A DNA stretch of 64,000 nucleotides from Lytechinus pictus (lineage: Eukaryota): NCBI RefSeq assembly GCF_037042905.1, contig NC_087250.1:14570001-14634000 (forward strand). The letters run 5' to 3'. This document shows, piece after piece, positions 30,063-57,839 of the stretch. Position 1 is the stretch's first letter. The number at the start of each line of letters is the position of its first letter. The notes under the pieces are model-generated. The model had not been told where the DNA came from, made no database searches, and was given only the letters and a program-made list of their open reading frames with translations. The position numbers and the translations under genes were made by a program.

Positions 30063-30078
30063 GTAAGGCTCTATTTAA

Positions 30079-32473: not shown

Positions 32474-35215
32474 TTAAACAGGTATAACACTATTGATGGC
32501 CCTATTGGATCTCATGCTCTTCTCAAACTGAGCCCAGAAGAGTTCCTGACCATCCTCATCATCTGTCCAGAGCATGTAAGGTTTGTTCTTACTCAAGAAC
32601 AACCGAACTAGGTACGGAAGGTCAGCATCCCGGATGTCCTCAAGGAAAATCAAGATGACCATGTCCAGTTTGGTATCGTTCATTTGCTCCAGGGCGATGC
32701 GCAACTTGGTCAAGAACCAAGCGTCATTTATACAGTTATAACTGATCAAAAGGACCGTCTTGAAACTGTTATCAACAACATAGTGAAGAGCATTGATGTA
32801 GAACATCGCAATGTTGAGGTCATTGTCCCCAAAGGCCACCTTCTGGAGATGTGGAAACCTTTCCCGCAGAACTGGCTTCAAGATGCCGTCAACCCATTCC
32901 TGGTCGTCTTCGTTATACATAATGTTTAGCTGGTATTCGTAGTCCTGTGCATCAAATTCATGGTTGATTTCCTCGTAGCCAAAGATGGCTAGCTTCAGGA
33001 GAAAGAACTTGTAGTTCAGCCACCATCGCTGCCGGTAAGCCACCAGGCCAATCACCAATACCAGAAGACCTGAAAGGCATACACTTGTGATCATCACAAA
33101 GTTTATTCCACAATATTTGTCTGGGTTAAATGTTAATATGGGTGAATCCACTTCTGCTTTGATTGATGTTAGTGAGCAGAGAGTTTGCTTTGGAAGCCTG
33201 AGTTCAATGTTGCCAGAACGAAGCCATTTCACAAACCAACTCAGTTGGCAAGTACAGGAGAATGGGTTTCCAGCAGCATCTATTCTCAGTGTCGTATTCG
33301 TTGGGAAGGACGTCATTGGTTCTATGGTGGTGATTCTGTTTTGTTGGATGAAAAGACTGTGCAAAGAGGTGGTTTCCTTGAACAATGTTCTTGGAATAGT
33401 CTCAAGTTTATTATTGCCTAAGAACAGAACGGCAAGGTGGTGTTGCCTTTGAAGCAGGGACTCGGGTACCTTCATAATCGCATTGTCCCGGACGTCCAGA
33501 GTTGTGAGGGCAGTCAGGCTATCAAAGACACCACAGCTCAGAACTGATATAGTACACTGAGACAGGTAAAGAATCCTGAGTTTCTTCATGGGGTTGAAAG
33601 TACCTGGTGCTAACATATCAAACTGATTTTGTCTCAGGTCCAGAACTATCAGGGAATTTAATCCCCAAAAGAGGGTCCTATTTGTCTTAGCATGGTGTAT
33701 ATCTGCACTTTTCAAGCTGCAGTCTCGCATGATTAGCCTATTGAGCGATGAAGCATTTGTAAATTGCCTCAGGGTGGTAATCTTTAACGGAGCAAAGGAC
33801 AAATCCAACACTTGCAGATGTCCCAGGTAGCGAAAAGCGCCATTGATGAGTTGCTGATTCTCGTTAGTGAGATGCAGCTCTTGAAGGTGTCTCAAGTTGA
33901 TAAAAGAGTATGGGGAGAATGACTGAGAGATGCCATTGTTGGACATGTTCAGAATTTGAAGATTTGTGAAACTCCACATTAAGAACCTTCGGATCGTTTT
34001 GAATTTGTTAAAAGACAGGTCTATATATTCTACTGAAGGAATTGTCACGTTGCTCCTCGGAATTTCTTCTATATTATTATGTGCCAAGTTGAGTTGGGAG
34101 AGTGAGAATAAGCCTGATACTAAATCAATAAACAGACTTGCAATCTGATTACTATTCAGCTTAAGTGTGGATAACATGTGCAGGCAGGAGAATGTCTTAA
34201 AGCTCAGAGTTGTCATGCAATTATAAGACAAATCCAAATCAATTAGGTTGTCCAATCCACAGAATGATTTACTAGATAAGTTGGCAACTCTGTTTCTATG
34301 AAGTGAAATTTTTTTTGTCTGATTGAACCCCCAAAACGCATAATCAGGTAAATATCGTATTCTGTTTCCTTTCATGATTATCATAGATATTTGACCATGA
34401 TCTTCTAGAGCAATGTGAGATTTGTTCCCTGAAATTATATATTCAATCTTGCAAGCATTTAAATCTAGATGTGTAATAGCACTTCTCCCTATAATCACTG
34501 AGGGAATAAAGTTTTGAAAATTGTTGTGTGACAGCAACAACCAATTCACTGTCTTCAAATAGGAGAAAACCTTAAAAGGAAGAGTCTGTAAGGCATTTCC
34601 TCTTAGGTATAGTTTTTCTAGTGAGCAGTTCTGTAGCGGTTCAAAGTCAAGGGCATCAAGAAAAGCGATTCTATTCTGAGATACATCAAGGGTCGTGATG
34701 CTGGTGGACCAAGGAAGTGCACTGCGTGGGAAAGAAACCAATCTGTTTTTGCCGAGAATGAGTATAGAGAGGAAACGGTTTTCACGGAACAACCCTGGGG
34801 GAAGAGAAACAAGTATGTTGTCTCGTAGACTTAATTTCCTGAGGTGACTCAGAGACTCAAAGGCACCATGTTCTATCTTCGACAGAACATTGTGTTCAAG
34901 TCCTAAGGAAGTGATATTTGGGTAATATGCAAAAGAGCCGTTGAACAAGGTTGATATCTTATTGAAGGAGAGATCGACCATTACTGTGTTCCGTGGAAGA
35001 TCCTGAGGAACAGATTTGAGGTGTAGGTGAGTGCAGATGGCTTTTGTTCCAAGGCTTGTGTTCTTGAGGATGCATTCTTCGGTCGACTCAGAGCTGAGAC
35101 TTCCTGAAACATCCTTGAAAGGCCGCTCAGCCAGAAGCAGGGACATGGTAAGGAGCAGTATCCCCAGACAGGAGGAAACCCTTGAGGCATTCATGGTGGT
35201 ATTAACAGCCAGCAT
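32474..35215 (-). CDS. Toll-like receptor copy A (intronless, 913 aa: signal peptide, LRRNT, about 20 LRRs, LRRCT, TM, TIR)
   Basis: LxxLxLxxNxL repeats; NPFSCTCQLSWFVKWL LRRCT; hydrophobic TM (FVMITSVCLSGLLVLVIGLVAY); C-terminal TIR domain. Confidence 0.97.
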   Translation of the reverse strand: MLAVNTTMNASRVSSCLGILLLTMSLLLAERPFKDVSGSLSSESTEECILKNTSLGTKAICTHLHLKSVPQDLPRNTVMVDLSFNKISTLFNGSFAYYPNITSLGLEHNVLSKIEHGAFESLSHLRKLSLRDNILVSLPPGLFRENRFLSILILGKNRLVSFPRSALPWSTSITTLDVSQNRIAFLDALDFEPLQNCSLEKLYLRGNALQTLPFKVFSYLKTVNWLLLSHNNFQNFIPSVIIGRSAITHLDLNACKIEYIISGNKSHIALEDHGQISMIIMKGNRIRYLPDYAFWGFNQTKKISLHRNRVANLSSKSFCGLDNLIDLDLSYNCMTTLSFKTFSCLHMLSTLKLNSNQIASLFIDLVSGLFSLSQLNLAHNNIEEIPRSNVTIPSVEYIDLSFNKFKTIRRFLMWSFTNLQILNMSNNGISQSFSPYSFINLRHLQELHLTNENQQLINGAFRYLGHLQVLDLSFAPLKITTLRQFTNASSLNRLIMRDCSLKSADIHHAKTNRTLFWGLNSLIVLDLRQNQFDMLAPGTFNPMKKLRILYLSQCTISVLSCGVFDSLTALTTLDVRDNAIMKVPESLLQRQHHLAVLFLGNNKLETIPRTLFKETTSLHSLFIQQNRITTIEPMTSFPTNTTLRIDAAGNPFSCTCQLSWFVKWLRSGNIELRLPKQTLCSLTSIKAEVDSPILTFNPDKYCGINFVMITSVCLSGLLVLVIGLVAYRQRWWLNYKFFLLKLAIFGYEEINHEFDAQDYEYQLNIMYNEDDQEWVDGILKPVLRERFPHLQKVAFGDNDLNIAMFYINALHYVVDNSFKTVLLISYNCINDAWFLTKLRIALEQMNDTKLDMVILIFLEDIRDADLPYLVRLFLSKNKPYMLWTDDEDGQELFWAQFEKSMRSNRAINSVIPV

Positions 35216-36329
35216 GATTGTGATCTGGAAGGTGTCACAACTGAAGGATCCTACCCATGTTACTCTCAGGATGGATAAATCTATCTGTAAGGACTGCTGG
35301 CCTTCAGGTAGTGGTGTAAAACTGTTTTCACAAGTACAAAATCAGCATCTCCTGTTTGGTTTCAGAAAAGCCAAAGTTGCATGTATTTGTACAATGACAA
35401 ACTGCAGTTTGGAATTGTCTTCCAGATTGCGATGTCACCACTGCCGAAGCAAATATCTTGATCAATTTAAATTGCTGCAAGAGAGTCAGGAATCTTGCCT
35501 TGTCCATAGACGTCCTCCCCTTGAAAGGTTGTCCGTAGCGACATTTGCTGCTGAATAATCATTTCAAATTCATTGTTGATATGAAGAACAAAGCAGCTGC
35601 AAAATTGATATGTTATGCTTCTGTGCAGATATGACTTGAAGCAAAGAAAGGATTGCAGAGATGAAGTGGCAAAGCAGACTGATGAATAAAGTCAAAGTTT
35701 CTGGAGCTCGAGTGCAATTTAAAATCACAAAATCATAGTTTGTTAACCGAGTGTCAAAGTCAGATAGCACTTGATAACAATGGAATGCTTAATCACTCTG
35801 AAATACATTTACATAACTTGAAGATTGCAACCAATTGTGCTTTTATTAGAAAAAAATAGTTTGTAATGAGTCTATTTTATAGCTGTTCTACTTTCGATTT
35901 CGGGTCTGATTCGTAATAAGTACTAGGAATGTACAATAATATTTTTTTTAAGTAAATAACTGGATAAACTTATTACCAGGATGTAAGGATATCAATGTTT
36001 CAGTTCTTTTAATAAAGCAAACATTTCCTGAGTACTCAAATCAATAATGATGAATGGTATTCTATTTCTTGGGTTTTTCTCTCTTTTTTTATCCCTTTCT
36101 TCCCTAAAGCAACCACTAGTCGAGCTGTATGAAATAAAATGATTTTAGTGGGTGTATTTAGCAATTTAACAGGAAATAATTGGTTTTATTTGCCCCCCAA
36201 AATTATTTTTTTCCTTTTGATATGAAACAAAAGTCTTTTGAATCTTTATTATAGAATGGGCTAATTATCTAAAGATATTGTTTTGTACATGTAGTATTAT
36301 GATATAACATACAGATATTCAATCACTAT

Positions 36330-36731
36330 GACCTGAATTCACAAAGGTGATTTTGAAAACCCACGGTTGAGTCCATGGTTTATGCAGATTTCCTGTATAA
36401 ATTACACTGATTTTACCGCGTATGCGCTTTTGTCACAGTGCGCCGAATTGACGCCTGTTACCATGGTTAGATATGCTATTTCATTCATGAGTCCACTGTT
36501 TTGAATTAATGAGTCCACTCTTCAAACAGTGGACTCATGAATAAAATAGCGTAACTAACCATGGTAACAGGCATCAATTTGGCGCACTGTGACAAAAGCG
36601 TGCATCAGCATTGGATATTTTTAAATACACGCGCCCGATACCTGCTAAATTAAGTGTAATTTATACAGGAAATCTGCATAAACCATGGATTCAACCGTGG
36701 GTTTTCAAAACCACCTTTGTGAATTCGGGAC
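36330..36731. mobile_element. Palindromic 400-bp MITE upstream of TLR A (paralogous copy 49080-49481; absent in unit C)
   Basis: Near whole-length inverted symmetry; TAT duplication; empty site AATCACTATATTTGTG near 61170. Confidence 0.85.
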
Positions 36732-39700
36732 TATATTTGTGAGATTTCAATGGTTTCCTTAAAAAAGTGTGGAAAGTGGAAACTTATATTTTCTTATTCT
36801 TTTACTATACATGTAAATGTATGGAACATATATGTTGATGCTTTTCGCTGAAAGACATATACAATGTGATGTATAGAACACTGGAAAGCAAGGAATTTTC
36901 ATTTTAAAAATCAGAATTCTTTGGACTTTGGTATACAGTGTGTCCCACAAAAAAAATGAAATCGAAATTTAGCAATGATTTATCATAACTTAATCACATA
37001 TACAATAGACAAATGACCTACCATTGTAAAGCTTAGAATCTCCTCTTTCAGCTGGTATAACATACAAGATTTCTCATCCATGCATGAGTGAATAAAAACA
37101 ATTTGAAGAAAGGATATCAAAAACTCATTTGGCAGTTGTTAAACAACTAGTAACAGGGGAGCAGCGTATAAATATGGTCAATATTTCATTTTACTACTGG
37201 TATTTTGTGTTTTGCAGATATGACAAGGCATGAGAATCACACGTAGGTGTGAGAGTTCAGCTTTTTATCTGATTTCATATTTTTTGGGGGGGGTTTGATT
37301 TTCAGCTTAATTTCAGTTAATTTTAGTTTTCCTCTGTTCAAAAACTGTGGGAGCTCTTTCTGTTTCAGTGTTTTTTTCCAACATTCTTTCAGCTTTTTTT
37401 CAGATATTTTTATTTGTGACCACTCACCCCTGACCACACTTTTTTGGAAGCAGGAGACCGTCAAAAACACGGATATACGTCGTGTAGTAATTCGAAATAC
37501 CACACGATGAATTATTTACGTCGTGTAGTAATTCGAATTACTACATTACACGACGCAATTCCGAATTACTACCCAACGATTTGTCATGACGTTAAATGAA
37601 TAGTGTCGCTACATCAAATAATTAAGGTCGTGTAGTAATTCGAATTACTACACGACGTAAATGATTACGTAGTGTAGTAATTCCAATTACTACACTACCT
37701 AAAGAATTACGTTGTGTAGTAAATAATTACTACACGACGTAATTCCGATTTACTGCTCAACGATTTAACGTCGTGACGTTAAATCAACCAATGAGATCGT
37801 TCGTTATTTGCGATGACGGCCGCAGACGTGAAACTACATACATTATATGTACCGCCGCCGTAGAGCTGTATATACAGCTCTATGACCGCCGCGTACAAAA
37901 TCAAATCCAGCTAGCTAGCTGCATGCATGATTATATGCGCCGTCCGTTATTGAAATATGATTGATCTCTCAGTTATTATTTTGCAATTATTCCCTAACAA
38001 GCTAACATCATTTGACAAGCATTTAATGTTGTGAAGTCAAATTCAGTTTTGTAAAGTGTGAAAAGCAATTTTTTAATAAATGCACCAGTATGTTTTTATG
38101 GGAACACTTTAGTTTTAATTTGTAAATATGTTAATATCATTGTAAATGATCATCTTCATGGAAAGGGGGAAAAGACCTTAAGGAGGAAGAGCTAAAATCA
38201 ATTCTTCCATGAGTAAATGGTTTAATTTCTGTCTTTAATCATTCATTTTCACACATTACCAATGTTTGCAAAACTCAAAAATATGATTCCCTTTTACCGC
38301 ATTTCATTCATTATTAATTTTCTTTTTGAAAATAAAAGGAAACAAGCAGTCTCTTTCTCAAAAGATATTTTTGTGCAAGAACACAATAAACAACTTTGTA
38401 ACAACAACGCGTCTCCTTACGGAGGGAAGGGACGCCCAACATGATTTACAAAGATCCCCTTTCTCCATGACCACAGATGCAATTCAAACAGGGTTTCTGC
38501 AAGATGTTGGTAAGAAGTTATAGATTCATACCCTGAAATAGCATTATGATTGATCTATCATAAAAGTTATCGATGTAGAAAGTCCGATTGTAATTTTGGG
38601 GGGGGGACATGAGGTATAGCATAAGAAATGTCAGGAAGGGGAGTCTTGTATAGCATAAGAATTATTCTACAGGAATTTGGTCCATAAATCAAAGCTAACA
38701 AAATGTGTATGAATTATTGGTCATTTATTGGAGAAGTTTAGTCTTACCTAGGATGTCACTTATTTTGTACAAAAGGAAATTTTCTGTTCTGTGATTTTGG
38801 ACACCCTCTATTTCCTGCCTTTAATTATTTTGTACCAACATCTTTACTGGGAATTTTTTTTACAGTCAACATCTCACAAGATGAATTTTTGTTGACCAAA
38901 AGATATAAGAGGACTTTGTTAGAGGTATAGATACAATTAGGTACAGAAAAAAAAGTAAACACGTTTTTTTTTTAAGGAACATTTGAATTTAATACTTTAT
39001 GAAAGTTAAAGTATTTAACTTTCATACAGGTTTCACAGTACAACAGATGATGTGATTTCACCAATCAACTGTGTTTTCTTCTTCAAACAAAAAATCAATG
39101 TGACATTGTGTACATGTATGTGTGTTGGGAATGTCATTCATGTTACACTTAAACAAATTGATATATAATCACAATGTATATGGCTGACAGTGGTTCCATA
39201 GTTCAGAAATATTCTGAACTAATTTCATACATAATACATCGCAAGGCTTATAGGTATCAATTAAACCCAACAGGCTAGAAAAGTATTTACCACAATAAGC
39301 AACCATGAAAACAAAAAGCTGGAGTAACTGCAGGGAATAAGTTATTTTAATTATTTGACATAGTTGATAAATACTGTTCTAAAAATACAAACATTCTAAA
39401 AAAGTACAGACCTTCATGGAATACTTTTCAATACTATTCAATACAGTATATATTGTAAAGAGAAAACCCCAAAACCTAACGCCCAACTAAGGCCGAAATA
39501 GAATACCTTTCACAATAAACACACATTGTACGATAGTAATATCAATTCTTTGTTTAAGATTTGAACATGTTCAATGAATGAATATTGCAGTAAAAATGTC
39601 TTTCTGGACTATACCTGCATAGTTAAAGACTGTACATGGCAATATCAATGCTTTGCCTAAGTCATGAACTAAAAACAAACAAACAAATAAAAACACCAGA

Positions 39701-40815
39701 CTAGCTGGCAATATGTTTCCTATACAAAAAAATACAATGTTCCTGGCAATATCAATGCTTATAAACTAATAAAATAAACATCTTTCTTACAACATGAAAG
39801 ACAACAAACCCGACTAGCTGTGCTTTGAATGTGCGCATTCGAAAATGATGCCTTGGCCATTGCATGAGTTTTATATCAACCCCAAATTAACATGCACTGA
39901 ATTTATTCATCAACTCAATTTTGACAGAAATCTTTCAACCAGATCTATATTTGCATTTATATCCCTCTTATGAATATTTATGAGTATTCTAGATAAACGA
40001 TTGGTCGATTTGTGATCATGTGACAAAGTATAATTTCAATAGGAAAACACATCGCTGCAATTAGCTCCGTAGGGGAACTTGTGACACTTTTTGCATTTTC
40101 CATGTTAGAATTGATATGACTAGTAATATTGTAGAAATAAGTACCTTGCCTTTAAATTTGATTCTTGGGAAATATTTTTCACCTATATATATATATCATC
40201 TTGACCTTTGAAAAAAACGATGTCAAATGGCTCAACTTGCCCCATCTGTGGGGTAACTTGTGCCACCGTCCGGGGTAAGTTGAGCCACAAAAACTATGTA
40301 CAAAAAATGTATGCGGGAAGAACCAGGATGTCAATTTTTCATTTAAAGTCTTTTCACTTGCTAATTCTCTATAAATACTAACATCTTCTAAAAGTAAAAG
40401 AACTGTCATGTGCATTTGCTCCTTTCTGCCTGCATATCAATGGCTTTTTATGTTTGTTTTTTTTTTATATCAAACATTACCATAAGAATTACCATGGCTA
40501 AACTTGCCCCATGTTGGTTGGCTTAAATTACCCCAGTCCGAACTTTTTGCGATATTTTCACATCCACACATTTCTTATGCATCCATCATGTAAAAGACTA
40601 TGACAAGAATGAGAATCAATACCTGGACTAACAATATTGATCTTACTAAATAGGTTCATTATTGCGGATTGAAATAATCGCTAGAGGGTATTCATTTGTC
40701 TCGCAATCTACTATGGTCAACAAGGAAATTCGTGATCACTCTCGCAAAAAGTGTTCACTGGCTTTCTAGGAAATTCGTGATCACTCTCGCAAAAAGTGTT
40801 CACTAGCTTACAAGT

Positions 40816-40856
40816 TCACGAGCTTTCGAGTGCCGCTGCAACTCTTTATCAAGTGA
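40816..40856 (-). ncRNA. Mirror copy of the minimal hammerhead ribozyme motif
   Basis: Reverse complement of 42579-42619. Confidence 0.75.
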
Positions 40857-41054
40857 CGAAAATTATCTGATGACGTACTCTATTTATACTAATCTCCAGG
40901 ACCGTACGCACGAACGCGAGAACAATAGGTGGGTATTGATCCGTTGCGTCGGTATGCGGCGCGGCCGGTAATCCGTATATGCAAATAAGCCGGGGGTATA
41001 TGCAAATACGCCGTGGGTCGGCGATATGCAAATTAGACAAAATTGGCGGGCTCG

Positions 41055-41676
41055 CTAGTTTCCCGTGGGCGGGGGCTGACTAGCTGAGCGGTCCCTCGTT
41101 CGGGGCCGGGAATGATCGGGTCGGCGTGCACTGCCAGGCAAGGGGGTATTGTGCTGTCTGATGGTTCGCATCCAGAAGTCGGGGATGTCGATCCCGCTGT
41201 CTCTGTTGAAGTTGTTAGGACAAAGACGTATACTAATAGCCTCCTTAATCCTGCGTGTATACCAATGTCTCTCTTTGGCAATGCAATGTACACCCTCCCA
41301 ATCTGGGTGGTGTTGTTTCTCCCAAGCATGTTCTGCCACCGCGGATGTGTCGGTTCGCTGTAACTGAACATCGCGCTTGTGTTCAGAAATGCGTTCAACT
41401 ATCGGTCGGGCTGTTTCTCCGATGTAAGACCCGTCACATCCCTGGCAAGGAATGTTGTATACTACGCCATCACGTCTGTGATCAGGGATAGGGTCTTTGG
41501 GGTGTACAAGCTGTTTGTGTAAGGTGGTGTCCGAGCGGAAAACCGTTCGGATACCGTGACCTTCTAATCGGCGTTTAATTTGTTGTGAGAGGCCATCTAT
41601 GTATGGCAAGACTGTGCAAGTCTTGAAAACCTTCTGATCCCTTGGTGGTAGTTTTTTCTTGAAAGTGTTCTTGATA
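41055..41676 (-). pseudogene. Inverted copy of the Penelope-like GIY-YIG ORF fragment
   Basis: Reverse complement of 41759-42380 with three visible amino-acid differences. Confidence 0.9.
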
Positions 41677-42380
41677 TCATAACTCACCCACCTGAACTCC
41701 CGAAAGAAAGAGCACACATACGTGGCGCCTTGTACAGCAACGGCTACCCACGCCGTTTTATCAAGAACACTTTCAAGAAAAAACTACCACCAAGGGATCA
41801 GAAGGTTTTCAAGACTTGCACAGTCTTGCCATACATAGATGGCCTCTCACAACAACTTAAACGCCGATTAGAAGGTCACGGTATCCGAACGGTTTTCCGC
41901 TCGGACACCACCTTACACAAACAGCTTGTACACCCCAAAGACCCTATCCCTGATCACAGACGTGATGGCGTAGTATACAACATTCCTTGCCAGGGATGTG
42001 ACGGGTCTTACATCGGAGAAACAGCCCGACCGATAGTTGAACGCATTTCTGAACACAAGCGCGATGTTCGGTTACAGCGAACCGACACATCCGCGGTGGC
42101 AGAACATGCTTGGGAGAAACAACACCACCCAGATTGGGAGGGTGTACATTGCATTGCCAAAGAGAGACATTGGTATACACGCAGGATTAAGGAGGCTATT
42201 AGTATACGTCTTTGTCCTAACAACTTCAACAGAGACAGCGGGATCGACATCCCCGACTTCTGGATGCGAACCATCAGACAGCACAATACCCCCTTGCCTG
42301 GCAGTGCACGCCGACCCGATCGTTCCCGGCCCCGAACGAGGGACCGCTCAGCTAGTCAGCCCCCGCCCACGGGAAACTAG
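41674..42380 (+). pseudogene. Penelope-like element ORF 3' part (end of RT thumb NGYP plus GIY-YIG endonuclease), 5'-truncated
   Basis: NGYP; LPYI.GLS; GVVYNIPCQGCDGSYIGET...R..EH...EH (GIY-YIG with CCHH); no ATG start. Confidence 0.9.
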
Positions 42381-42578
42381 CGAGCCCGCCAATTTTGTCT
42401 AATTTGCATATCGCCGACCCACGGCGTATTTGCATATACCCCCGGCTTATTTGCATATACGGATTACCGGCCGCGCCGCATACCGACGCAACGGATCAAT
42501 ACCCACCTATTGTTCTCGCGTTCGTGCGTACGGTCCTGGAGATTAGTATAAATAGAGTACGTCATCAGATAATTTTCG

Positions 42579-42619
42579 TCACTTGATAAAGAGTTGCAGC
42601 GGCACTCGAAAGCTCGTGA
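42579..42619 (+). ncRNA. Minimal type I hammerhead ribozyme motif in the PLE pseudo-LTR
   Basis: TCAC-TTGATAA-A-GAGT(tgcagcggc)ACTC-GAAA-GC-TC-GTGA: stem I TCAC/GTGA, U3:A8 core variant, stem II, GAAA, palindromic AGCT in place of stem III. Confidence 0.75.
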
Positions 42620-44292: not shown

Positions 44293-44648
44293 CAGGGTTC
44301 CCAGCCCATCAGGGAAATCAGGGAAAATTATTTTACTTTTTATCCAGTCAGGGAAAAATCAGGGAATTTGATAGAAAATACCTCAAATTGGGGAAAAATC
44401 AGGGAATTTTGATCAGCCCAAAAGTCGAAAGCACGGTAGTCAGATTCTGTTATATTTTGTTCAATCCATTGAATGACTGGTTATTGTGGAACTAATTAGT
44501 TTTACATCATTGTTTTTATACTGAAAATACATGTAATTCACTGCAACAACTTAGAAAACATGCAAAACTGGGAATGGGTTTAAATCATTATCAGGTAATT
44601 TTAAACTGAATCAGGGAATTTTGTTTTCTTGAAAATCTGGGAACCCTG
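44293..44648. mobile_element. CAGGGTTCCCAG-TIR MITE with 5-bp TSD AATAC (paralogous copy 54164-54525)
   Basis: Perfect 12-bp TIR; internal TCAGGGAA repeats; AATAC on both sides. Confidence 0.8.
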
Positions 44649-45223
44649 AATACAGAGCAGTATACATGTACATTTAGGGTCAATGGGTAGATCTACTATA
44701 TTATTGCATGCCTTCCACTTCTTAATAATTGTAATAATTATAGCCAGCTTTATAGAGTGCTTTTTGCCTGAGGATGCAAAGTGCTGCTTTTATTACCCCA
44801 GCTGTAGCTCGAGTTGCCATCACCAGCGCTCGCTCAGTGCATTCAAGGAATCAATCCTGCCGGTACCCATTCAATTTGCCTGGTCGAGCGCAGTACAGTG
44901 TGGATAAATTTCTTGCTGACATATAAACACACCATGCCTAAGATTCAAACCCACGACCCTCTGTTTAAAAGGCGAGAGTCAGAACCACCACATCATGATG
45001 CACCCACCCGGTTCCTGGTTGTAGAAAAGTTAATACTATGGGAACTTTGCCAACCAATGGAAACCCGTAGCGCTCCACATCCAATCAAATTTAAGGATTT
45101 CATGGAGGTAACCATTTGTAGCAAAGTTTAATACCATTGAAGTAACCTTCTGCAACATGGTCCTGGAGAGGACAAGTGGAAAAAAAGTCTTGATCACCTT
45201 AAGGTTTTTATTTTTAAAATGGA

Positions 45224-47965: not shown

Positions 47966-50194
47966 GATTGTGATCTGGAAGGTGTCACAACTGAAGGATC
48001 CTACCCATGTTACTCTCAGGATGGATAAATCTATCTGTAAGGACTGCTGGCCTTCAGGTAGTGGTGTAAAACTGTTTTCACAAGTACAAAATCAGCATCT
48101 CCTGTTTGGTTTCAGAAAAGCCAAAGTTGCATGTATTTGTACAATGACAAACTGCAGTTTGGAATTGTCTTCCAAATTGCGATGTCACCACTGCCGAAGC
48201 AAATATCTTGATCAATTTAAATTGCTGCAAGAGAGTCAGGAATCTTGCCTTGTCCATAGACCTCCTCCCCTTGAAAGTTTGTCCGTAGCGACATTTGCTG
48301 CTGAATAATCATTTCAAATTCATTGTTGATATGAAGAACAAAGCAGCTGCAAAATTGATATGTTATGCTTCTGTGCAGATATGACTTGAAGCAAAGAAAG
48401 GATTGCAGAGATGAAGTGGCAAAGCAGACTGATGAATAAAGTCAAAGTTTCTGGAGCTCGAGTGCAATTTAAAATCACAAAATCATAGTTTGTTAACCGA
48501 GTGTCAAAGTCAGATAGCACTTGATAACAATGGAATGCTTAATCACTCTGAAATACATTTACATAACTTGAAGATTGCAACCAATTGTGCTTTTATTAGA
48601 AAACAATAGTTTGTAATGAGTCTATTTTATAGCTGTTCTACTTTCGATTTCGGGTCTGATTCGTAATAAGTACTAGGAATGTACAATAATATTTTTTTTA
48701 AGTAAATAACTGGATAAACTTATTACCAGGATGTAAGGATATTAATGTTTCAGTTCTTTTAATAAAGCAAACATTTCCTGAGTACTCAAATCAATAATGA
48801 TGAATGGTATTCTATTTCTTGGGTTTTTCTCTCTTTTTTTATCCCTTTCTTCCCTAAAGCAACCACTAGTCGAGCTGTATGAAATAAAATGATTTTAGTG
48901 GGTGTATTTAGCAATTTAACAGGAAATAATTGGTTTTATTTGCCCCCCAAAATTATTTTTTTCCTTTTGATATGAAACAAAAGTCTTTTGAATCTTTATT
49001 ATAGAATGGGCTAATTATCTAAAGATATTGTTTTGTACATGTAGTATTATGATATAACATACAGATATTCAATCACTATGACCTGAATTCACAAAGGTGA
49101 TTTTGAAAACCCACGGTTGAGTCCATGGTTTATGCAGATTTCCTGTATAAATTACACTGATTTTACCGCGTATGCGCTTTTGTCACAGTGCGCCGAATTG
49201 ACGCCTGTTACCATGGTTAGATATGCTATTTTATTCATGAGTCCACTGTTTTGAATTAATGAGTCCACTCTTCAAACAGTGGACTCATGAATAAAATAGC
49301 GTAACTAACCATGGTAACAGGCATCAATTTGGCGCACTGTGACAAAAGCGTGCATCAGCATTGGATATTTTTAAATACACGCGCCCGATACCTGCTAAAT
49401 TAAGTGTAATTTATACAGGAAATCTGCATAAACCATGGATTCAACCGTGGGTTTTCAAAACCACCTTTGTGAATTCGGGCCTATATTTGTGAGATTTCAA
49501 TGGTTTCCTTTAAAAAGTGTGGAAAGTGGAAACTTATATTTTCTTATTCTTTTACTATACATGTAAATGTATGGAACATATATGTTGATGCTTTTCGCTG
49601 AAAGACATACAATGTGATGTATAGAACACTGGAAAGCAAGGAATTTTCATTTTAAAAATCAGAATTCTTTGGACTTTAGTATACAGTGCATCCCACAAAA
49701 AATGAAATCGAGATTTAGCAATGATTTATCATAATTTAATCACATATACAATAGACAAATGACCTACCATTGTAAAGTTTAGAATCTCTTCTTACAGCTG
49801 GTATAACATACAAGATTTCTCATCCATGCATGAGTGAATAAAAACAATTTTAAGAAAGGATATCAAAAACTCATTTGGCAGTTGTTAAACAACTAGTAAC
49901 AGGGGAGCAGCGTATAAATATGGTCAATATTTCATTTTACTACTGGTATTTTGTGTTTTGCAGATATGACAAGGCATGAAAATCACACGTAGGTGTGAGA
50001 GTTCAGCTTTTTATCTGATTTCAGATTTTTTTTTTGGTTTTGATTTTGATTTTCAGCTTAATTTCAGTTAATTTTAGTTTTCCTCTGTACAAAAACTGTG
50101 GAAGCTCTTTCTGTTACAGTTTTTTTCCAACACTCTTTTAGCTTTTTTTCAGATATTTTTATTTGTGACCACTCACACCCCTGACCTCACTTTT

Positions 50195-53100
50195 ATGGAA
50201 GCAGGAGACCGTCAAAAACACGGATATACGTTGTGTCGTAATTCAATTTACTACACGACGTAAATATTTACGTTGTGTAGTAATGAATAATTACTACACG
50301 ACGTAATTCCGAATTACTGCTCAACGATTTAACGTCGTGACGTTAAATCAACGTCGTGACGTTAAATCAACCAATGAGATTGTTCGTTATTTGCGATGAC
50401 GGCCACAGACGTGAAACTACATACATTATATGTACCGCCGCCATAGAGCTGTATATACAGCTCTATGACCGCCGTGTACAAAATCCAATCCAGCTAGCTA
50501 GCTGCATGCAACTGCATGCATGATTATATGCGCCGTCCGTTATTGAAATATGATTGATCTCTCAGTTATCATTTTGCAATTGTTCCCTAACAAGCTAACA
50601 TCATTTGACAAGCATTTCATGTTGTGAAGTCAAATTCAGTTTTGTAAAGTGTGAAAAGCAATTTTTTAATAAATGCACCAGTATTTTTTTATGGGAACAC
50701 TTTAGTTTTAATTTGTAAATATGTTAATATTATTGTAAATGATCATCTTCATGGAAAGGGGGAAAAGACCTTAAGGAGGAAGAGCTAAAATCAATTCTTC
50801 CATGAGTAAATGGTTTAATTTCTGTCTTTAATCATTCATTTTCACACATTACCAATGTTTGCAAAACTCAAAAATATGATTCCCTTTTACCGCATTTCAT
50901 TCATTATTAATTTTTTTGTTGAAAATAAAAGTAACAAGCAGTCTCTTTCTCAAAAAATATTTTTGTGCAAGAACACAATAAACAAGTTTGTAACAACGCG
51001 TCTCCTTACGGAGGGAAGGGACGCCCAACATAATTTACAAAGATCCCCTTTCTCCATGACCACAGATGCAATTCAAACAGGGTTTCTGCAAGATGTTGGT
51101 AAGAAGTTATAGATTCATACCCTGAAATAGCATTATGATTGATCTATCATAATAGTTATCGATGTAGAAAGTCCGATTGTAATTTTTGGGGGGACATGAG
51201 GTATAACATAAGAAATGTCAGGAAGGGGAGTCTTGTATAGCATAAGAATGATTCTACAGGAATTTGGTCCATAAATCAAAGCTAACAAAATGTGAATGAA
51301 TTATTGGTCATTTATTGGAGAAGTTTAGTCTTACCTAGGATGTCACTTATTTTGTACAAAAGGAAATTTTCTGTTCTGTGATTTTGGACACCCTCTATTT
51401 CCTGCCTATAATTATTTTGTACCAACATCTTTACAGGGAATTTTTTTTTACAGTCAACATCTCACAAGATGAATTTTTGTTGACCAAAAGATATAAGAGG
51501 ACTTTGTTAGAGGTATAGATACAATTAGGTACAGAAAAAAAAGTAAACATGTTTTTTTTAAGGAACATTTGAGTTTAATACTTTATGAAAGTTAAAGTAT
51601 TTAACTTTCATACAGGTTTCACAGTACAACAGATGATGTGATTTCACCAATCAACTGGGTTTTCATCTTCAAACAAAAATCAATGTGACATTGTGTATGT
51701 GTGTTGGGAATGTCATTCATGTTACACTTAAACAAATTGATATATAATCACAATGTATATGGCTGACAGTGGTTCCATAGTTCGAAAATATTCTGAACTA
51801 ATTTCATACATAATACATCGCAAGGCTTATAGGTATCAATTAAACCCAACAGGCTAGAAAAGTATTTACCACAATTAGCAACCATGAAAACAAAAAGCTG
51901 GAGTAACTGCAGGGAATAAGTTATTTTAATTATTTGACATAGTTGATAAATACTGTTCTAAAAATACAAACATTCTAAAAAAGTACAGACCTTCATGGAA
52001 TACTTTTCAATACTATTCAATACATTATATATTTTAAAGAGAAAACCCCAAAACATAACGCCCAACTAAGGCCGAAATAGAATACCTTTCACAATAAACA
52101 CACATTGTACGATAGTAATATAAATTCTTTGTTTAAGATTTGAACATGTTCAATGAATGAATATTGCAGTAAAAATGTCTTTCTGGACTATACCTGCATA
52201 GTTAAAGACTGTACATGGCAATATCAATGCTTTGCCTAAGTCATGAACTAAAAACAAACAAACAAATAAAAACACCAGACTAGCTGGCAATATGTTTCCT
52301 ATACAAAAAATACAATGTTCCTGGCAATATCAATGCTTATAAACTAATAAAATAAACATCTTTCTTACAACATGAAAGACAACAAACCCGACTAGCTGTG
52401 CTTTGAATGTGCGCATTCGAAAATGATGCCTTGGCCATTGCATGAGTTTTATATCAACCCCAAATTAACATGCACTGAATTTATTCATCAACTCAATTTT
52501 GACAATAATCTTTCTACCAGATCTATATTTGCATTTATATCCCTCTTATGAATATTCATGAGTATTCTAGATAAACGATTGGTCAATTCGTGATCATGTG
52601 ACAAAGTATAATTTCAATAGGAAAACGCATCTCTGCAATTAGCTCCGTATAGTTTTCCTGTAGCTCCGTATATTTTTCGATATACTTTCATGGGCAGAAC
52701 TGTGCATGCTCATGCTCGATATTTTCTCTCAACTTTGAATTGCGCATGCTCCCTGACTTGACCCAGATATCGATCATCCGAAAAAAGTAAATAAAGTAAA
52801 ATACAAGCTCTTGCCCAAATTACCGTACCGACAATCTAAAAAACAGTGTGGAATTGGGTCTAGATTACAATGCAGAAAATCTAATTCCGACGGCCATAAT
52901 TCATACAGGATCTTTTACTATGGAATAAACATACCTAACATAACAAGGTGAGTCAAGATCCGATACTAATTTTTAGAGCATACATTTTAACTGCGCGTAT
53001 TTATTTTGAGCGCCACTGCAGCAACGGCCAACGCAGCGCAGCGGACCTCTCATTAAGTGCAGTCGGGTAGAAGCCGCGCGCAGCCTACCCATGGACTGTC

Positions 53101-53972
53101 TAGCAATTAGCTCGACAGGCCTAGAGTACTAGGGTTGGCAACGTTAGATTTGGTCGAGATTGGTTAAAAAATAGCAAGGACTAGGTCCACAAAGTTAAAG
53201 AGGGATATAAAACAAATATATCAGGCGTTTCTTTCGAAAGCATAGTGGGAATTATTAATCCTCGGTTGGACTGGCAATGTAAATATTTTTCCCTCGGGGC
53301 TTCGCTCCTCGGGAAAAATAGTAATTGCCAGTCCAACCTCGAATAAATAATTCCCACTATACTTTCTCAAAGCCTGATATATTTGTATAATATGTGACCT
53401 TGTGATCAGTGACCTTGCCCGGGATTTCTGCAACCATGTCACACGCGGTAGGGGCCGGCCGGAGGGACGTACCGCACCGTTGTTCCGAATTCCATGTGGT
53501 GTACCTTGGCGCGCGCGCTGCTCTGGCACTGCCGGTACGTTCCGGTACAATACTCTGTAGTCTCAGCTCTTTGCATTGCGCTCATATAACGAACGATCTC
53601 ATTGGTTGATTTGACGTCACTACACTAATTCATTTAACGTCATGACGTTAAATCGTTGAGCAGTAATTCGGAATTACGTTTTGTAGTAATTATTTACTAC
53701 ACGACGTAATTCTTTAGGTAGTGTAGTAATTGGAATTACTACACGACGTAATTATTTACGTCGTGTAGTTTTTCGAATTGCTACACGACCTCAATTATTT
53801 AATGTAGCGACACTAATTCATTTAACGTCATGACATTAAATCATTGGGCAGTAATTCGGAATTGCGTCGTGTAGTATTTCGAATTACTACACGACGTAAT
53901 TGTTTACGTCGTGTGGTAAATTGAATTACGACACGACGTATATCCGTGTTTTTGACGGTCTCCTGCTTCCAT
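50195..53972. mobile_element. Same non-autonomous TIR transposon (unit C copy, about 3.8 kb)
   Basis: Same TIRs, same insertion site and near-identical internal sequence. Confidence 0.88.
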
Positions 53973-55097
53973 GCACTTTTGTACAACAGAGTGTGTATGC
54001 AGCAACAAACAGAATCAGTATTCACAGCTGCCTACCATGAAGAAAACTCACTACTTTTTTTGAAAAGATAATGTGAAAAGGATAGTATAAAAGGTTTTTT
54101 TTTTTTAGTATGAATTCAGGGTTGATAGAAGGGGGAAAGAGAAAGTATCCTGAAATTAAATACCAGGGTTCCCAGCCCATCAGGGAAATCAGAGAAAATT
54201 ATTTTACTTTTTATCCAGTCAGGGAAAAATCAGGGAATTTGATAGAAAATACCTCAAATTGGGGGAAAATCAGGGAATTTTGATCAGCCCAAAAGTCAAA
54301 AGCACGGTAGTCAGATATTTTGTTGAATATTGAAACAACATCCATTGAATGGCTGGTTATGGTGGTAATAATTAGTTTTACATTATTGTTTTTATACTGA
54401 AAATACATGTAATTCACTGCAACAACTTAGAAACACATGCGAAAGTGGGAATGGGTTTAGATAATTATCAGGTAATTTTAAACTGAATCAGGGAATTTTG
54501 TTTTCTTGAAAATCTGGGAACCCTGAATACAGAGCAGTATACATGTACATTTAGGGTCAATGGGTAGATCTACTATATTATTGCATGCCTTCCACTTCTT
54601 AATAATTGTAATATTTATAGCCAGCTTTTTAGAGTGCTTTTTGCCCGAGGATGCAAAGTGCTGCTTTTATTACCCCAGCTGTAGCTCGAGTTGCCATCAC
54701 AAGCGCTCGCTCAGTGCATTCAAGGAATCAATCCTGCCGGTACCCATTCAACTTGCCTCGTTCGAGCGCAGTACAGTGTGGATAAATTTCTTGCTGACAG
54801 GAAAACACACCATAGATTCAAACCCACGACCCTCTGTTTAAAAGGCGAGAGTCAGAACCACCACATCATGATGCACCCACCCGGTTCCTGGTTGTAGAAA
54901 AGTTAATACTATGGGAACTTTGCCAACCAATGGCAACCTCCGTGGTCATAGCGCTCCACATCCAATCAAATTCAAGAATTTCATGGAGGTAACCATTTGT
55001 AGCAAAGTTCAATACCATTGAAGTAACCTTCTGCAACAGGGTCCTGGAGAGGACAAGTGGAAAAAAAATCTTGATCACCTATAAGTTTTAAAATAGA

Positions 55098-57839
55098 TTA
55101 AACAGGTATAACACTATTGATGGCCCTATTGGATCTCATGCTCTTCTCAAACTGAGCCCAGAAGAGTTCCTGACCATCCTCATCATCTGTCCAGAGCATG
55201 TAAGGTTTGTTCTTACTCAAGAACAACCGAACTAGGTACGGAAGGTCAGCATCCCGGATGTCCTCAAGGAAAATCAGGATGACCATGTCCAGTTTGGTAT
55301 CGTTCATTTGCTCCAGGGCAATGCGCAACTTGGTCAAGAACCAAGCGTCATTTATACAGTTATAGCTGATCAAAAGGACCGTCTTGAAACTGTTATCAAC
55401 AACATAGTGAAGAGCATTGATGTAGAACATCGCAATGTTGAGGTCATTGTCCCCAAAGGCCACCTTCTGGAGATGTGGAAACCTTTCCTGCAGAACTGGC
55501 TTCAGGACGCCGTCAACCCATTCCTGGTCGTCTTCGTTATACATAATGTTTAGCTGGTATTCGTAGTCCTGTGCATCAAATTCATGGTTGATTTCCTCGT
55601 AGCCAAAGATGGCTAGCTTCAGGAGGAAGAACTTGTAGTTCAGCCACCATCGCTGCCGGTAAGCCACCAGGCCAATCACCAATACCAGAAGACCTGAAAG
55701 GCATACACTTGTGATCATCACAAAGTTTATTCCACAATATTTGTCTGGGTTAAATGTTAGTATGGGTGAATCCACCTCTGCTTTGATTGATGTTAGTGAG
55801 CAGAGAGTTTGCTTTGGATGCCTGAGTTCAATGTTGCCAGATCGAAGCCATTTCACAAACCAACTCAGTTGGCAAGTACAGGAGAATGGGTTTCCAGCAG
55901 CATCTATTCTCAGTGTCGTATTCGTTGGGAAGGACGTCATTGGTTCTATGGTGGTGATTCTGTTTTGTTGGATGAACAGACTGTGCAAAGAGGTGGTTTC
56001 CTTGAACAATGTTCTTGGAATGGTCTCAAGTTTATTATTGCCTAAGAACAGAACGGCAAGGTGGTGTTGCCTTTGAAGCAGGGACTCGGGTACCTTCATA
56101 ATCGCATTGTCCCGGACGTCCAGAGTTGTGAGGGCAGTCAGGCTATCAAAGACACCACAGCTCAGAACTGATATAGTACACTGAGACAGGTAAAGAACCC
56201 TGAGTTTCTTCATGGGGTTGAAAGTACCTGGTGCTAACATATCAAACTGATTTTGTCTCAGGTCCAGAACTATCAGGGAATTTAATCCCCAAAAGAGGGT
56301 CCTATTTGTCTTAGCATGGTGTATATCTGCACTTTTCAAGCTGCAGTCTCGCATGATTAGCCTATTGAGCGATGAAGCATTTGTAAATTGCCTCAGGGTG
56401 GTAATCTTTAACGGAGCAAAGGACAAATCCAACACTTGCAGATGTCCCAGGTAGCGAAAAGCGCCATTGATGAGTTGCTGATTCTCGTTGGTGAGATGCA
56501 GCTCTTGAAGGTGTCTCAAGTTGATAAAAGAGTATGGGGAGAATGACTGAGAGATGCCATTGTTGGACATGTTCAGAATTTGAAGATTTGTGAAACTCCA
56601 CATTAAGAACCTTCGGATCGTTTTGAATTTGTTAAAAGACAGGTCTATATATTCTACTGAAGGAATTGTCACGTTGCTCCTCGGAATTTCTTCTATATTA
56701 TTATGTGCCAAGTTGAGTTGGGAGAGTGAGAATAAGCCTGATACTAAATCAATAAATAGACTTGCAATCTGATTACCATTCAGCTTAAGTGTGGATAACA
56801 TGTGCAGGCAGGAGAATGTCTTCAAGCTCAGAGTTGTCAAGAGATTATAAGACAAATCCAAATCAGTTAGGTTGTTCAATCCACAGAATGATTTACTAGA
56901 TAAGCTGGCAACTCTGCTGTTGTGAAGCGAAATAGTTTTTGTCTGATTGAACCCCCAAAACGCATAATCAGGTAAATATCGTATTCTGTTTCCTGTCATG
57001 ATTATCATAGATATTTGCCCGTGATCTTCTACAGCAATGTGAGATTTGTTCCGTGAAATTATATTTTCAATATTGCAAGAACTTAAATCTAGATGTGTAA
57101 TAGCACTTCTCCCTAAAACCGCAGATGGGGTAAAGTTTAGAAAATTGTTCTTTGACAGCGACATCCACTTGACTGTATTTAAAGTGGAGAAAACCTTAAA
57201 AGGAAGAGTATGTAAGGCATTTCTTCCAATATATAGTTTTTCCAGTGAGCAGTTCTCTAGCGGGTCAAAGTCAAGGGCATCAAGGAAAGCGATTCTATTC
57301 TGAGATACATCAAGGGTCGTGATGCTGTTGGACCAAGGAAGTGCACTGCTTGGAAAAGAAACCAATCTGTTTTTGCCAAGGATGAGTATAGAGAGTAAAA
57401 GGTTCGCACGGAACAACCCTGAGGGTAGAGAATCCAATCTGTTGTGTTTTAGAGATAAGTTCCTGAGGTGGCTCAGAGGCTCAAAGGCACCATGTTCTAT
57501 CTTCGACAGAACATTGTGTTCAAGTCCTAAGGAAGTGATATTTAGAAGATATGCAAAAGAACCGTTGAGCAAGGTTGGTATCGAATTAAAGGATAGATCG
57601 ACCGTTACTGCGTTGCTTGGGAGATCCTGAGGAACAGATTTGAGGTGTAGGTGAGAGCAGATGGCTTTTGTTCCAAGGTTTTTGTTCTTGAGGATGCATC
57701 CTTCGGTCGACTCAGAGCTGAGACTTCCTGAAACTTCCTTGACAGGCCACTCAGCCAGAAGCAGGGACATGGTAAAGAACAGTATCCCCAGACAGGAGGA
57801 AACCCTGGAGACGTTCATTGTGGTATTAACAGCCAGCAT
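55098..57839 (-). CDS. Toll-like receptor copy C (intronless, 913 aa from the ATG at 57839)
   Basis: Same architecture. The ORF-track start at 57872 is a TTG; the ATG equivalent to copies A and B is at 57839. Confidence 0.96.
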   Translation of the reverse strand: MLAVNTTMNVSRVSSCLGILFFTMSLLLAEWPVKEVSGSLSSESTEGCILKNKNLGTKAICSHLHLKSVPQDLPSNAVTVDLSFNSIPTLLNGSFAYLLNITSLGLEHNVLSKIEHGAFEPLSHLRNLSLKHNRLDSLPSGLFRANLLLSILILGKNRLVSFPSSALPWSNSITTLDVSQNRIAFLDALDFDPLENCSLEKLYIGRNALHTLPFKVFSTLNTVKWMSLSKNNFLNFTPSAVLGRSAITHLDLSSCNIENIISRNKSHIAVEDHGQISMIIMTGNRIRYLPDYAFWGFNQTKTISLHNSRVASLSSKSFCGLNNLTDLDLSYNLLTTLSLKTFSCLHMLSTLKLNGNQIASLFIDLVSGLFSLSQLNLAHNNIEEIPRSNVTIPSVEYIDLSFNKFKTIRRFLMWSFTNLQILNMSNNGISQSFSPYSFINLRHLQELHLTNENQQLINGAFRYLGHLQVLDLSFAPLKITTLRQFTNASSLNRLIMRDCSLKSADIHHAKTNRTLFWGLNSLIVLDLRQNQFDMLAPGTFNPMKKLRVLYLSQCTISVLSCGVFDSLTALTTLDVRDNAIMKVPESLLQRQHHLAVLFLGNNKLETIPRTLFKETTSLHSLFIQQNRITTIEPMTSFPTNTTLRIDAAGNPFSCTCQLSWFVKWLRSGNIELRHPKQTLCSLTSIKAEVDSPILTFNPDKYCGINFVMITSVCLSGLLVLVIGLVAYRQRWWLNYKFFLLKLAIFGYEEINHEFDAQDYEYQLNIMYNEDDQEWVDGVLKPVLQERFPHLQKVAFGDNDLNIAMFYINALHYVVDNSFKTVLLISYNCINDAWFLTKLRIALEQMNDTKLDMVILIFLEDIRDADLPYLVRLFLSKNKPYMLWTDDEDGQELFWAQFEKSMRSNRAINSVIPV

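Follow-up and report, generated by a model that had tools for sequence, protein, structure and literature searches.

Segment exchange, probably by unequal crossover and gene conversion, in a tandem array of three TLR3-like genes of Lytechinus pictus

Sea urchins possess very large TLR repertoires, and their diversity is usually ascribed to duplication and positive selection. The locus described here raises the question of how three neighbouring TLR genes of Lytechinus pictus came to be related to one another in different ways along their length. A sequence-only reading of the window, the whole stretch of 64,000 nucleotides that was analysed, had described them as segmental mosaics. Gene A (32474..35215), the middle gene B (45224..47965) and gene C (55098..57839) all lie on the minus strand, and each is an intact TLR ORF of 913 aa. 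Judged from sequence and structural modelling, they are predicted to form a tandem array of TLR3-like single-exon TLR genes of the single cysteine-cluster type. The ectodomain matched Pfam LRR_8 at 4e-67, and 23 LRRs were mapped by motif, to which the AF2 model (pLDDT 81.8) gave a corresponding ladder of short beta strands. The LRRCT cysteines (CxC...C...C) were invariant, a transmembrane (TM) helix was modelled at residues 706-728, and the Pfam TIR score was 23.9 bits vs a cutoff of 21.3. Alignment with full-length TLR3 (7c76; E 1e-50) extended over residues 371 to 872 and covered the TM and TIR. The linkage order C-I1-B-I2-A, where I1 and I2 are the spacers, is that given by the genome assembly. 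No record was returned when public assemblies were queried for the exact proteins of A and B.

Among the coding sequences (CDS) of A, B and C, 159 sites were variable, and the pair of genes that agreed depended on the segment. Over nt 1-1083 (N block), A and B were 0.4% different and C was 9.6% different; 103 sites joined A and B against C, and the other two kinds of pattern occurred at two sites each. Over nt 1109-1785 (middle block), A and C were 0.3% different and B 5.1%, with 37 sites joining A and C against B and one site of each other kind. After nt 1818 all pairs were 0.7-1.4% different, and the patterns over nt 1818-2742 were mixed (BC|A at eight sites, AB|C at five, AC|B at two and three-state at one). 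The residue counts of the sequence-only reading were reproduced in the proteins: A and B differed at three of residues 1-355 (47, 77 and 282), where C differed at about 60, and A equalled C over residues 370-543, where B differed at exactly 18. The LRRCT position for which three states (L/R/H) had been reported was located at residue 674, with codons CTT/CGT/CAT; the ancestral codon is CGT, a CpG site.

A recombination signal, the absence of which had been named as a refutation of the mosaic, was significant in both kinds of permutation analysis. The 3SEQ-like maximum descent was 34, a statistic that never exceeded 13 in 200,000 permutations (p<5e-6), and the max-chi-square analysis put one breakpoint at 1083/1109 and the other in the interval 1785-2064, each with p<=2e-4. 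In gene A the first breakpoint lies at 34108..34132 (minus strand), between the diagnostic CDS sites 1083, where A equals B, and 1109, where A equals C (window 34133/34107), where LRR12 passes into LRR13, in agreement with the switch point proposed near 34110-34155. The second lies at 33399..33430 (minus strand), between CDS nt 1785 and 1818 (window 33431/33398). They enclose a probable C-derived conversion tract at 33431..34107 (minus strand), running from LRR13 to LRR21/22, with a minimum extent of CDS nt 1109-1785 and a maximum of 1084-1817, in which A and C differed at 2 of 705 nt. Could selective pressure or mutation rate varying along the gene give such a pattern with no exchange at all? 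We regard this as extremely improbable. The dN/dS ratio does vary (0.7 in the N block, 0.3 in the middle block and 0.1 in the 3' third, <1 in all blocks), but rate variation cannot make A closest to B and then to C in successive blocks, and the same switches were seen at synonymous sites. Adjacent segments supported mutually incompatible trees, and a single tree was rejected both by the permutation tests and by the block trees that included the outgroup species.

That outgroup species was Lytechinus variegatus. Its syntenic locus (CM031020.1) has two genes 15.2 kb apart, one A-like (LvA, XP_041466744.1, the positional orthologue of A) and one C-like (LvC, XP_041466745.1, that of C). Its outer flanks are collinear with those upstream of C and downstream of A, and it has no counterpart of B. 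When rooted three-taxon AU tests had no outgroup other than distant paralogues, the middle block was weak (p 0.06-0.08) and the 3' third gave no resolution; the L. variegatus orthologues then resolved the middle block. The N-block tree recovered ((A,B),LvA) with support of 98-99 and (C,LvC) with 99-100. The middle-block tree recovered (B,LvA) with a bootstrap of 94 and (A,C) with 89, monophyly of A+B+C being rejected (AU 0.005-0.03), and the grouping of (A,C) with LvC was weak at 45%. In the 3'-block tree, (A,B,C) at 89 and (LvA,LvC) at 100 were recovered and orthology trees were rejected (AU 4e-5). In the quartet site patterns, agreement by orthology gave way to agreement within species, at nt 1109 with A in the quartet and at about nt 1800 with B. 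L. variegatus has conversion tracts of its own.

With the A-like lineage called alpha and the C-like lineage gamma, gene A has an alpha-type N block, a gamma-type middle block and a homogenised 3' third, B has alpha-type N and middle blocks, and C is gamma-type across all LRRs. Three of the four possible combinations of N-terminal and C-terminal LRR blocks thus exist, all on one predicted signalling module. The middle block of B (46181..46857, minus strand) is the original alpha version, retained, and groups with LvA. The transfer most likely ran from C to A, as the internal tract in A is bordered on either side by sequence of A itself and the pre-tract state is visible in B and LvA, read in one genome and with 45% support for C with LvC. 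The alpha and gamma versions are of the same age in both blocks (old-lineage dS 0.134 in the N block and 0.12 in the middle block), and derived states were divided about equally between the two lineages. An outside donor of C's N block or B's middle block was considered and rejected: the nearest other paralogues in the genome, L004-L006 (83% nt identity), stood equally far from A, B and C whichever block was compared.

The 3' third of A (32474..33398, minus strand), which encodes LRR22-23, LRRCT, TM and TIR, has been homogenised with those of B (45224-46148) and C (55098-56022). Its dS among the three genes was 0.03-0.05 vs 0.12-0.13 elsewhere; across the two species it was 0.03-0.07 within and 0.11-0.16 between species. 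Since the synonymous distance to outgroup paralogues was similar in every block (0.43-0.56), the low dS reflects homogenisation and not a slow rate. The constant signalling module of the sequence-only reading is therefore accounted for by purifying selection (dN/dS ~0.1) plus homogenisation, and its appeal to gene conversion is borne out by this concerted evolution and by the 0.7-kb C-like tract in A. Its further proposal, that B equals C in the TIR while A differs, was correct as to the letters (V778I and Q784R are private to A) and failed as a third phylogenetic relationship, because A-private derived changes account for five of the eight BC|A sites, and the tree of this segment lacks resolution.

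The same proposal extended to the transposable elements of the 3' flank. A SINE-like repeat pair of 609 nt does lie 3' of B (44397..45005, minus strand) and of C (54268-54878), with none 3' of A or 3' of LvC, yet no breakpoint in the TIR is thereby shown, the repeats being common to B and C because both flanks are copies of one spacer. The pair consists of two interspersed repeats of ~270 nt with thousands of candidate copies in a genome search, and ARAGORN found no tRNA in these downstream repeats. The spacers, ~7-10 kb long, are I1 between C and B (47966..55097, minus strand) and its duplicate I2 between B and A (35216..45223, minus strand), with a divergence of 1.8-5%. Only I2 carries a 2.9-kb insertion (40072..43022, no strand assigned) with an inverted repeat (40673-41676 / 42762-41759, 99.6% identity), earlier called Penelope-like. 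B combines the 5' flank of A with the 3' flank of C, and A's own 3' flank was, over its first 200 nt, 11-16% diverged from those of B and C. The upstream flanks of A and B were 99.3-99.6% identical across ~1.7 kb, a region with 85-88% identity between species and no special conservation. Together with CDS nt 1-1082 this flank forms a low-divergence tract in A (34134..36930, minus strand; B counterpart ~46884-49680), in which 12 of 2822 nt differed (0.43%) vs 1.8% in the distal spacer (binomial p 4e-11). The unequal crossover postulated from sequence fits well with the duplicated spacer, the chimeric middle gene and the two-gene state of L. variegatus.

The same features could, however, arise by false tandem duplication, in which each chromosome would carry only two genes (C and A) and the near-identical 3' third would have led the assembler to string both haplotypes together head to tail. 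On this view B would be a fusion of 5' sequence from the second A allele with 3' sequence from the second C allele, and the A/B difference over LRR13-21 would be a conversion polymorphism segregating at a single locus. The structure of B is exactly as such a join predicts, and unequal crossover yields the identical structure. Divergence of 1.8-5% is within the expected allelic range of sea urchins, and that of I1 and I2, with the private insertion, resembles such variation; the syntenic locus of L. variegatus also has two genes. The contigs of run X1 (a Logan contig set of 193 Mb) point the same way, with no B-type middle block among them and equal depth over the gene contig (9.64) and A's private 3' flank (9.57), although absence from a set of only 193 Mb proves nothing. 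Against this explanation, there is no gap (N) in the window between 22199 and 64000, and a chimeric join would have no read-supported path in a long-read assembly. We consider false duplication unlikely, and even under it C-to-A conversion and concerted evolution in the 3' third would hold. One X1 contig of 3191 nt carries the A-type junction with both diagnostic letters of the first breakpoint, and these sites are 27 nt apart, so that a single 31-mer spans them. The sites at which the contig departs from A are precisely those of the tract edge and the 3' block, with B/C-like letters in the 3' third, which means either that the A-private changes are polymorphic or that the contig is a path through several copies.

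Reciprocal crossovers only, with cycles of duplication and deletion producing the chimeras and no non-reciprocal conversion, were judged very unlikely. One unequal crossover is required in any case, and in a single genome the products of crossover and conversion are not always distinguishable. But the C-like tract of 0.7 kb lies inside A, between A's own flanks, and C is unchanged, so that without conversion two exchanges at exact positions would be required. A B x C hybrid would moreover be expected between C and B and not in A's place, and the homogenised 3' third of the two L. variegatus genes could not be produced by crossover without a change in copy number.

Considering these results, we propose that the three-gene array is probably real and was shaped by non-allelic homologous recombination, comprising both unequal crossover and conversion. 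Before the split from L. variegatus, one gene would have duplicated into gamma, the present C, on the upstream side and alpha, the present A, on the downstream side. Their N-terminal LRRs then would have diverged fast (dN/dS 0.7), while the 3' third may have been kept similar by recurrent gene conversion, separately in each species, plus purifying selection. The resulting long, near-identical 3' block could have been the substrate for an unequal crossover of alpha and gamma, which would have produced B with the alpha 5' flank, alpha LRR1-21 and gamma 3' flank, and duplicated the spacer. Later, a tract of ~0.7 kb (LRR13-21) was presumably copied from C to A, and A and B presumably became alike over a tract of ~2.8 kb that takes in LRRNT-LRR12 and 1.7 kb of upstream sequence. 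These tracts adjoin and seem to be of the same recent age, so they were perhaps made in one template-switching repair event. The order and number of these steps and the position of the crossover are our reconstruction, and any functional benefit would be a further supposition.

The shuffling of LRR blocks had been read as giving combinatorial ectodomain diversity, which is apt as a description of the three block combinations; selection for diversity was unsupported. When variable residues were mapped on the solenoid, as had been suggested, Fisher tests on the exposed x positions of LxxLxLxxN gave no significant enrichment on the concave face, and hence no sign there of diversifying selection (p=0.09 in the N block, p=0.55 in the middle block). 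A broader reading, to which we give little weight, would be that segment exchange is a general, selectively maintained source of new ectodomains in echinoid TLR arrays, that the homogenised LRRCT-TM-TIR block acts as an in-built recombination substrate, spawning chimeras time and again and allowing exchange of N- and C-terminal LRR blocks, that such tracts segregate in populations, and that the N and C LRR blocks are separate recognition surfaces, the last by analogy with TLR3, which has two ligand-contact sites. A second paralogue triplet, L007/L009/L010, is likewise mosaic (p about 5e-5), and this, the tracts of L. variegatus and the X1 differences at tract edges are hints in the direction of general exchange.

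Exchange of blocks between paralogues is already well known in tandem immune receptors, and the closest analogue is mammalian TLR1/TLR6, where gene conversion between the tandem genes occurred independently in each species (Kruithof et al., 2007, PMC2077338; wider TLR1 family, PMC3125219). In both systems tandem TLR paralogues have N-terminal LRRs that follow orthology and a C-terminal block that is closer between paralogues than between orthologues through conversions in each species; the converted block comprises LRR16-19, the C-terminal cap, TM and most of the TIR in TLR1/TLR6, and LRR22-23, LRRCT, TM and TIR here. The present locus differs in having three genes, a chimeric middle gene attributable to recent unequal crossover and a separate internal tract (LRR13-21) passed between two non-adjacent genes, in TLR3-like echinoderm TLRs and not in TLR1-family members, and the exchange is traceable step by step. 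In a comparison of Strongylocentrotus purpuratus and L. variegatus, sccTLR genes were described as single-exon tandem arrays with a variable ectodomain and conserved TIR, as is also the case here, and their diversity was attributed to duplication and positive selection, in a text that uses neither the term gene conversion nor the term recombination (Buckley and Rast, 2012, PMC3367398). In contrast, the exchange itself is demonstrated here, in a small array with no concave-face enrichment. The Sp185/333 (SpTransformer) clusters are likewise echinoid immune genes for which segmental duplication and gene conversion are discussed and, according to their titles, microsatellites and short tandem repeats are implicated in diversification (PMC3091723, PMC5103432); by comparison, the protein family here is unrelated and the likely substrate is a long identical 3' coding block. 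Within the literature that could be searched, no direct report of gene conversion or unequal crossing-over in sea-urchin TLRs was found.

The locus may serve as a worked example in which unequal crossover and short conversion tracts also create new receptor combinations, and in which the signalling half is kept uniform through conversion as well as selection. For such families, gene trees and selection scans of the PAML type would be unreliable unless recombination is treated block by block, and array copy number may vary among close species or haplotypes. An X1 contig also skips 70 nt (32307-32376) downstream of A. A 3'-UTR intron was considered and rejected, and the skip is an indel, since GT/AG ends are missing and the direct repeat TTGCCAT stands at its edges.

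In this 811-Mb genome, the window holds three open reading frames of at least 250 aa, genes A (32474-35215), B (45224-47965) and C (55098-57839), all on the minus strand and each an intact frame of 913 aa. Many leucine-rich repeats (LRRs) were matched in every one (Pfam LRR_8, 4e-67), and all three C-terminal TIR domains scored above the curated Pfam cutoff. In an AlphaFold model (mean pLDDT 81.8), a protein of this type has 23 LRRs flanked by LRRNT and LRRCT, then a transmembrane helix (residues 706-728) and a TIR fold; its nearest solved relative by sequence was full-length vertebrate TLR3 (E 1e-50), in an alignment spanning the transmembrane and TIR regions. Another TLR frame of the genome matches, at 100% identity, an NCBI protein assigned to Lytechinus pictus, which makes L. 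pictus the probable source.

Among A, B and C, 159 coding sites are variable, and their grouping changes along the gene. In the N block (nt 1-1083), 103 sites join A and B against C, two join A and C, and two join B and C; in the middle block (nt 1109-1785) the corresponding counts are one, 37 and one, with no three-state site in either block, and in the 3' third (nt 1818-2742) they are five, two and eight, with one three-state site. With A as child and B and C as parents, the 3SEQ-like random-walk statistic reached a maximum descent of 34, against at most 13 in 200,000 permutations. Max-chi-square analysis placed breakpoint 1 between nt 1083 and 1109 (window 34133/34107), at the LRR12/LRR13 boundary, and breakpoint 2 between nt 1785 and 2064. 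The sequence-only reading had counted three amino acid differences separating A from B over residues 1-355, 18 residues specific to B within 370-543, two TIR residues private to A and three states at residue 674, and all these counts were reproduced. Its proposal of a third relationship, with B equal to C in the TIR, was not upheld, as the 3' third has no resolved relationship among the three genes: five of its eight sites joining B and C are derived and private to A, two are derived in B and C, and at codon 674 the ancestral CGT (a CpG) was hit twice, giving three states.

The 90% clusters of A and of C each contained one Lytechinus variegatus protein, with consecutive accessions. Their genes, the A-like LvA and C-like LvC, are separated by 15.2 kb on CM031020.1 and have the order and orientation seen in the window, and a 38-kb region is collinear with it from C's upstream flank to well past A's downstream flank, an 83-bp satellite included. 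This region has two TLR genes only; B has no counterpart there, and the SINE pair is missing downstream of LvC. In the N block tree, ((A,B),LvA) received 98-99% and (C,LvC) 99-100%, so the duplication that separated the lineages of A (alpha) and C (gamma) is older than the species split. In the middle block, (B,LvA) received 94% and (A,C) 89%, and all topologies with A, B and C monophyletic were rejected (AU 0.005-0.03); here the alpha version persists in B, and A, orthologous to LvA by position, has C's version, which sets the direction of conversion as C to A. The 3' third grouped (A,B,C) at 89% and (LvA,LvC) at 100%, orthology trees were rejected (AU 4e-5), and this block has evolved in concert within each of the two species. 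Quartet site patterns using B followed orthology until about nt 1800 and the within-species pattern after it, and those using A made the same switch at nt 1109.

The first 300 nt of the two L. variegatus genes cluster together (bootstrap 100) and are 4% apart (L032:10001-10300 vs L031:10001-10300, their loci on CM031020.1), whereas most of the remaining N block differs by 12-18%; this is an independent 5' conversion tract, which the window's species does not show. In the annotation, an actin gene model (439 aa, opposite strand) spans both genes and extends past each end of their 22-kb loci; the model is over-extended, or else the TLR genes sit inside one of its introns, which would be very long.

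Synonymous divergence (dS) is 0.134 for C vs A/B in the N block, 0.12 for B vs A/C in the middle block and 0.03-0.05 among the three genes in the 3' third, and is 0.004-0.006 for A vs B in the N block and A vs C in the middle block. As dS to outgroup paralogues varies little from block to block (0.43-0.56), the low values reflect recent common ancestry and not a slow synonymous rate. On the scale of orthologue dS (0.10-0.14), the spacer duplication (~2%) and the young tracts (~0.4%) are recent. Raw divergence is 9.6% in the N block and 5.1% in the middle block, with dN/dS of 0.7 vs 0.3, and this gap is a difference in dN, not in age. An outside donor for the mosaic blocks was ruled out, since the nearest other paralogues, three genes on other chromosomes with 83% nucleotide identity, show the same distance to A, B and C block by block.

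Self-comparison of the window showed that the B-A spacer (35216-45223) is a copy of the C-B spacer (47966-55097), and B is accordingly flanked upstream as A is and downstream as C is. The sole interruption of the copy is a 2.9-kb insertion (40072-43022) holding a 1-kb inverted repeat, which a separate note of the sequence-only reading labelled Penelope-like. In the downstream flank common to B and C lie two paired SINE-like repeats (609 nt), absent behind A; in the first 200 nt past the stop, divergence is 16% for A-B, 11% for A-C and 5% for B-C, and the upstream flank of C differs from those of A and B by 5-9%. Between A and B, the distal spacer is 1.8% divergent, and the stretch from ~36930 down to breakpoint 1 only 0.43% (12/2822; binomial p 4e-11). 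Constraint does not account for this low value, because the stretch upstream of A and B has 85-88% identity between species, no better than other non-coding DNA. The upstream edge of the tract sits within window 36316-37400, a high-copy interspersed repeat judging from summed contig depth, very high in each of the four runs, and from the many joints and loose ends there.

Considering these results, we propose as most likely a history in which an old tandem duplication would have given gamma (C) and alpha (A), the N-terminal LRRs would have diverged fast at the amino-acid level, faster on the gamma side, and the 3' third would have been converted repeatedly. An unequal crossover inside the homogenised 3' block would have generated B and the second spacer copy, and a 0.7-kb conversion of C into A would have come later, with a 2.8-kb equalisation between A and B as young as this tract. 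The two young tracts abut, and thus one round of repair that switched template may have made both. Equally well, the 1.8% that separates the spacer copies could be allelic divergence caught by a very recent crossover between homologues.

Read evidence came from Logan contigs, which for sequencing run X1, from the same organism, total 193 Mb. One 3191-nt contig across 32597-35781 has A's letters at both sites bracketing breakpoint 1, which are 27 nt apart and covered by one 31-mer, and at all listed diagnostic sites of the N and middle blocks; the junction of alpha N block and gamma middle block is therefore present in a second data set. In the 3' third the contig departs from A at 1818 (C's letter) and 2021 (B's letter), and at 2064, 2080 and 2214 it has the B/C letters, which are ancestral, unlike A's. 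Polymorphism of the 3' changes private to A would explain this, as would a contig assembled along several copies. No B-type contig was seen in X1, an absence that proves nothing with 193 Mb of contigs only. A false tandem duplication derived from haplotypes, with B an unconverted A allele, would give exactly B's structure; we consider it unlikely, and both the conversion from C into A and the concerted 3'-third evolution hold even under it. Depth in X1 is flat (9.6) over 32040-35781 and falls beyond, a profile that looks more transcript-like than genomic-DNA-like. A 70-nt skip (32307-32376) in the 3'-flank contig was rejected as an intron, being bounded by the direct repeat TTGCCAT; this stretch of A's flank, kept in B and C, is an indel polymorphism.

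The sequence-only reading also spoke of combinatorial ectodomain diversity. As a description of what resulted (alpha-alpha, alpha-gamma and gamma-gamma) it is accurate; it is not a demonstrated function, given that dN/dS is below 1 in every block and variable residues of the three ectodomains show no significant concentration at exposed beta-strand positions. Orthologue dN/dS is 0.54 on the gamma side vs 0.24 on the alpha side, the basis for the faster gamma divergence in the history proposed above.

The closest analogue of the array is mammalian TLR1/TLR6, in which separate conversions in the individual species keep LRR16-19, the C-terminal cap, the transmembrane segment and most of the TIR alike, and orthology is followed by the N-terminal LRRs (PMC2077338). 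The main study of the echinoderm TLR family attributed diversity to duplication and positive selection, with no mention of recombination or gene conversion (PMC3367398), and our literature searches found no report of sea-urchin TLR gene conversion. The locus is an unusually legible and tidy case of a mechanism that is itself not new and would not surprise a specialist. A second mosaic triplet and the independent L. variegatus tracts hint at generality.

That triplet of TLR paralogues, ~70% identical to A, comprises L007 (C5:3491608-3492771 region) and, on a different chromosome, L009 and L010 (C15:20652922 and 20661918, 9 kb apart); L007 is closest to L009 at ~nt 300-600 and to L010 at ~nt 900-1200 (3SEQ-like p ~5e-5). 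Two further intact TLR genes, L004 (C21:13830521-13833230) and L005 (C21:1843749-1846458), are 0.3-1.4% diverged, in opposite orientation with 12 Mb between them, and L006 (C20) is 3-5% away; the pair may reflect recent dispersed duplication, or one gene may be a duplicate made in assembly.

Around the array, the 83-bp satellite (30072-31826; 21 copies, 89% match) lies directly downstream of A and also occupies the syntenic L. variegatus place (positions 28428-29055 of the merged L032 and L031 region). Also downstream of the array, two ~680-nt arms (25758-26432 and 26600-27276) form an inverted repeat with 96.9% identity. On the upstream side, the old upstream homology of C with A and B is broken up ~1.1 kb from C by a satellite (58972-60445; 9.5 copies) whose unit is 154 bp, with 307 bp also scored.
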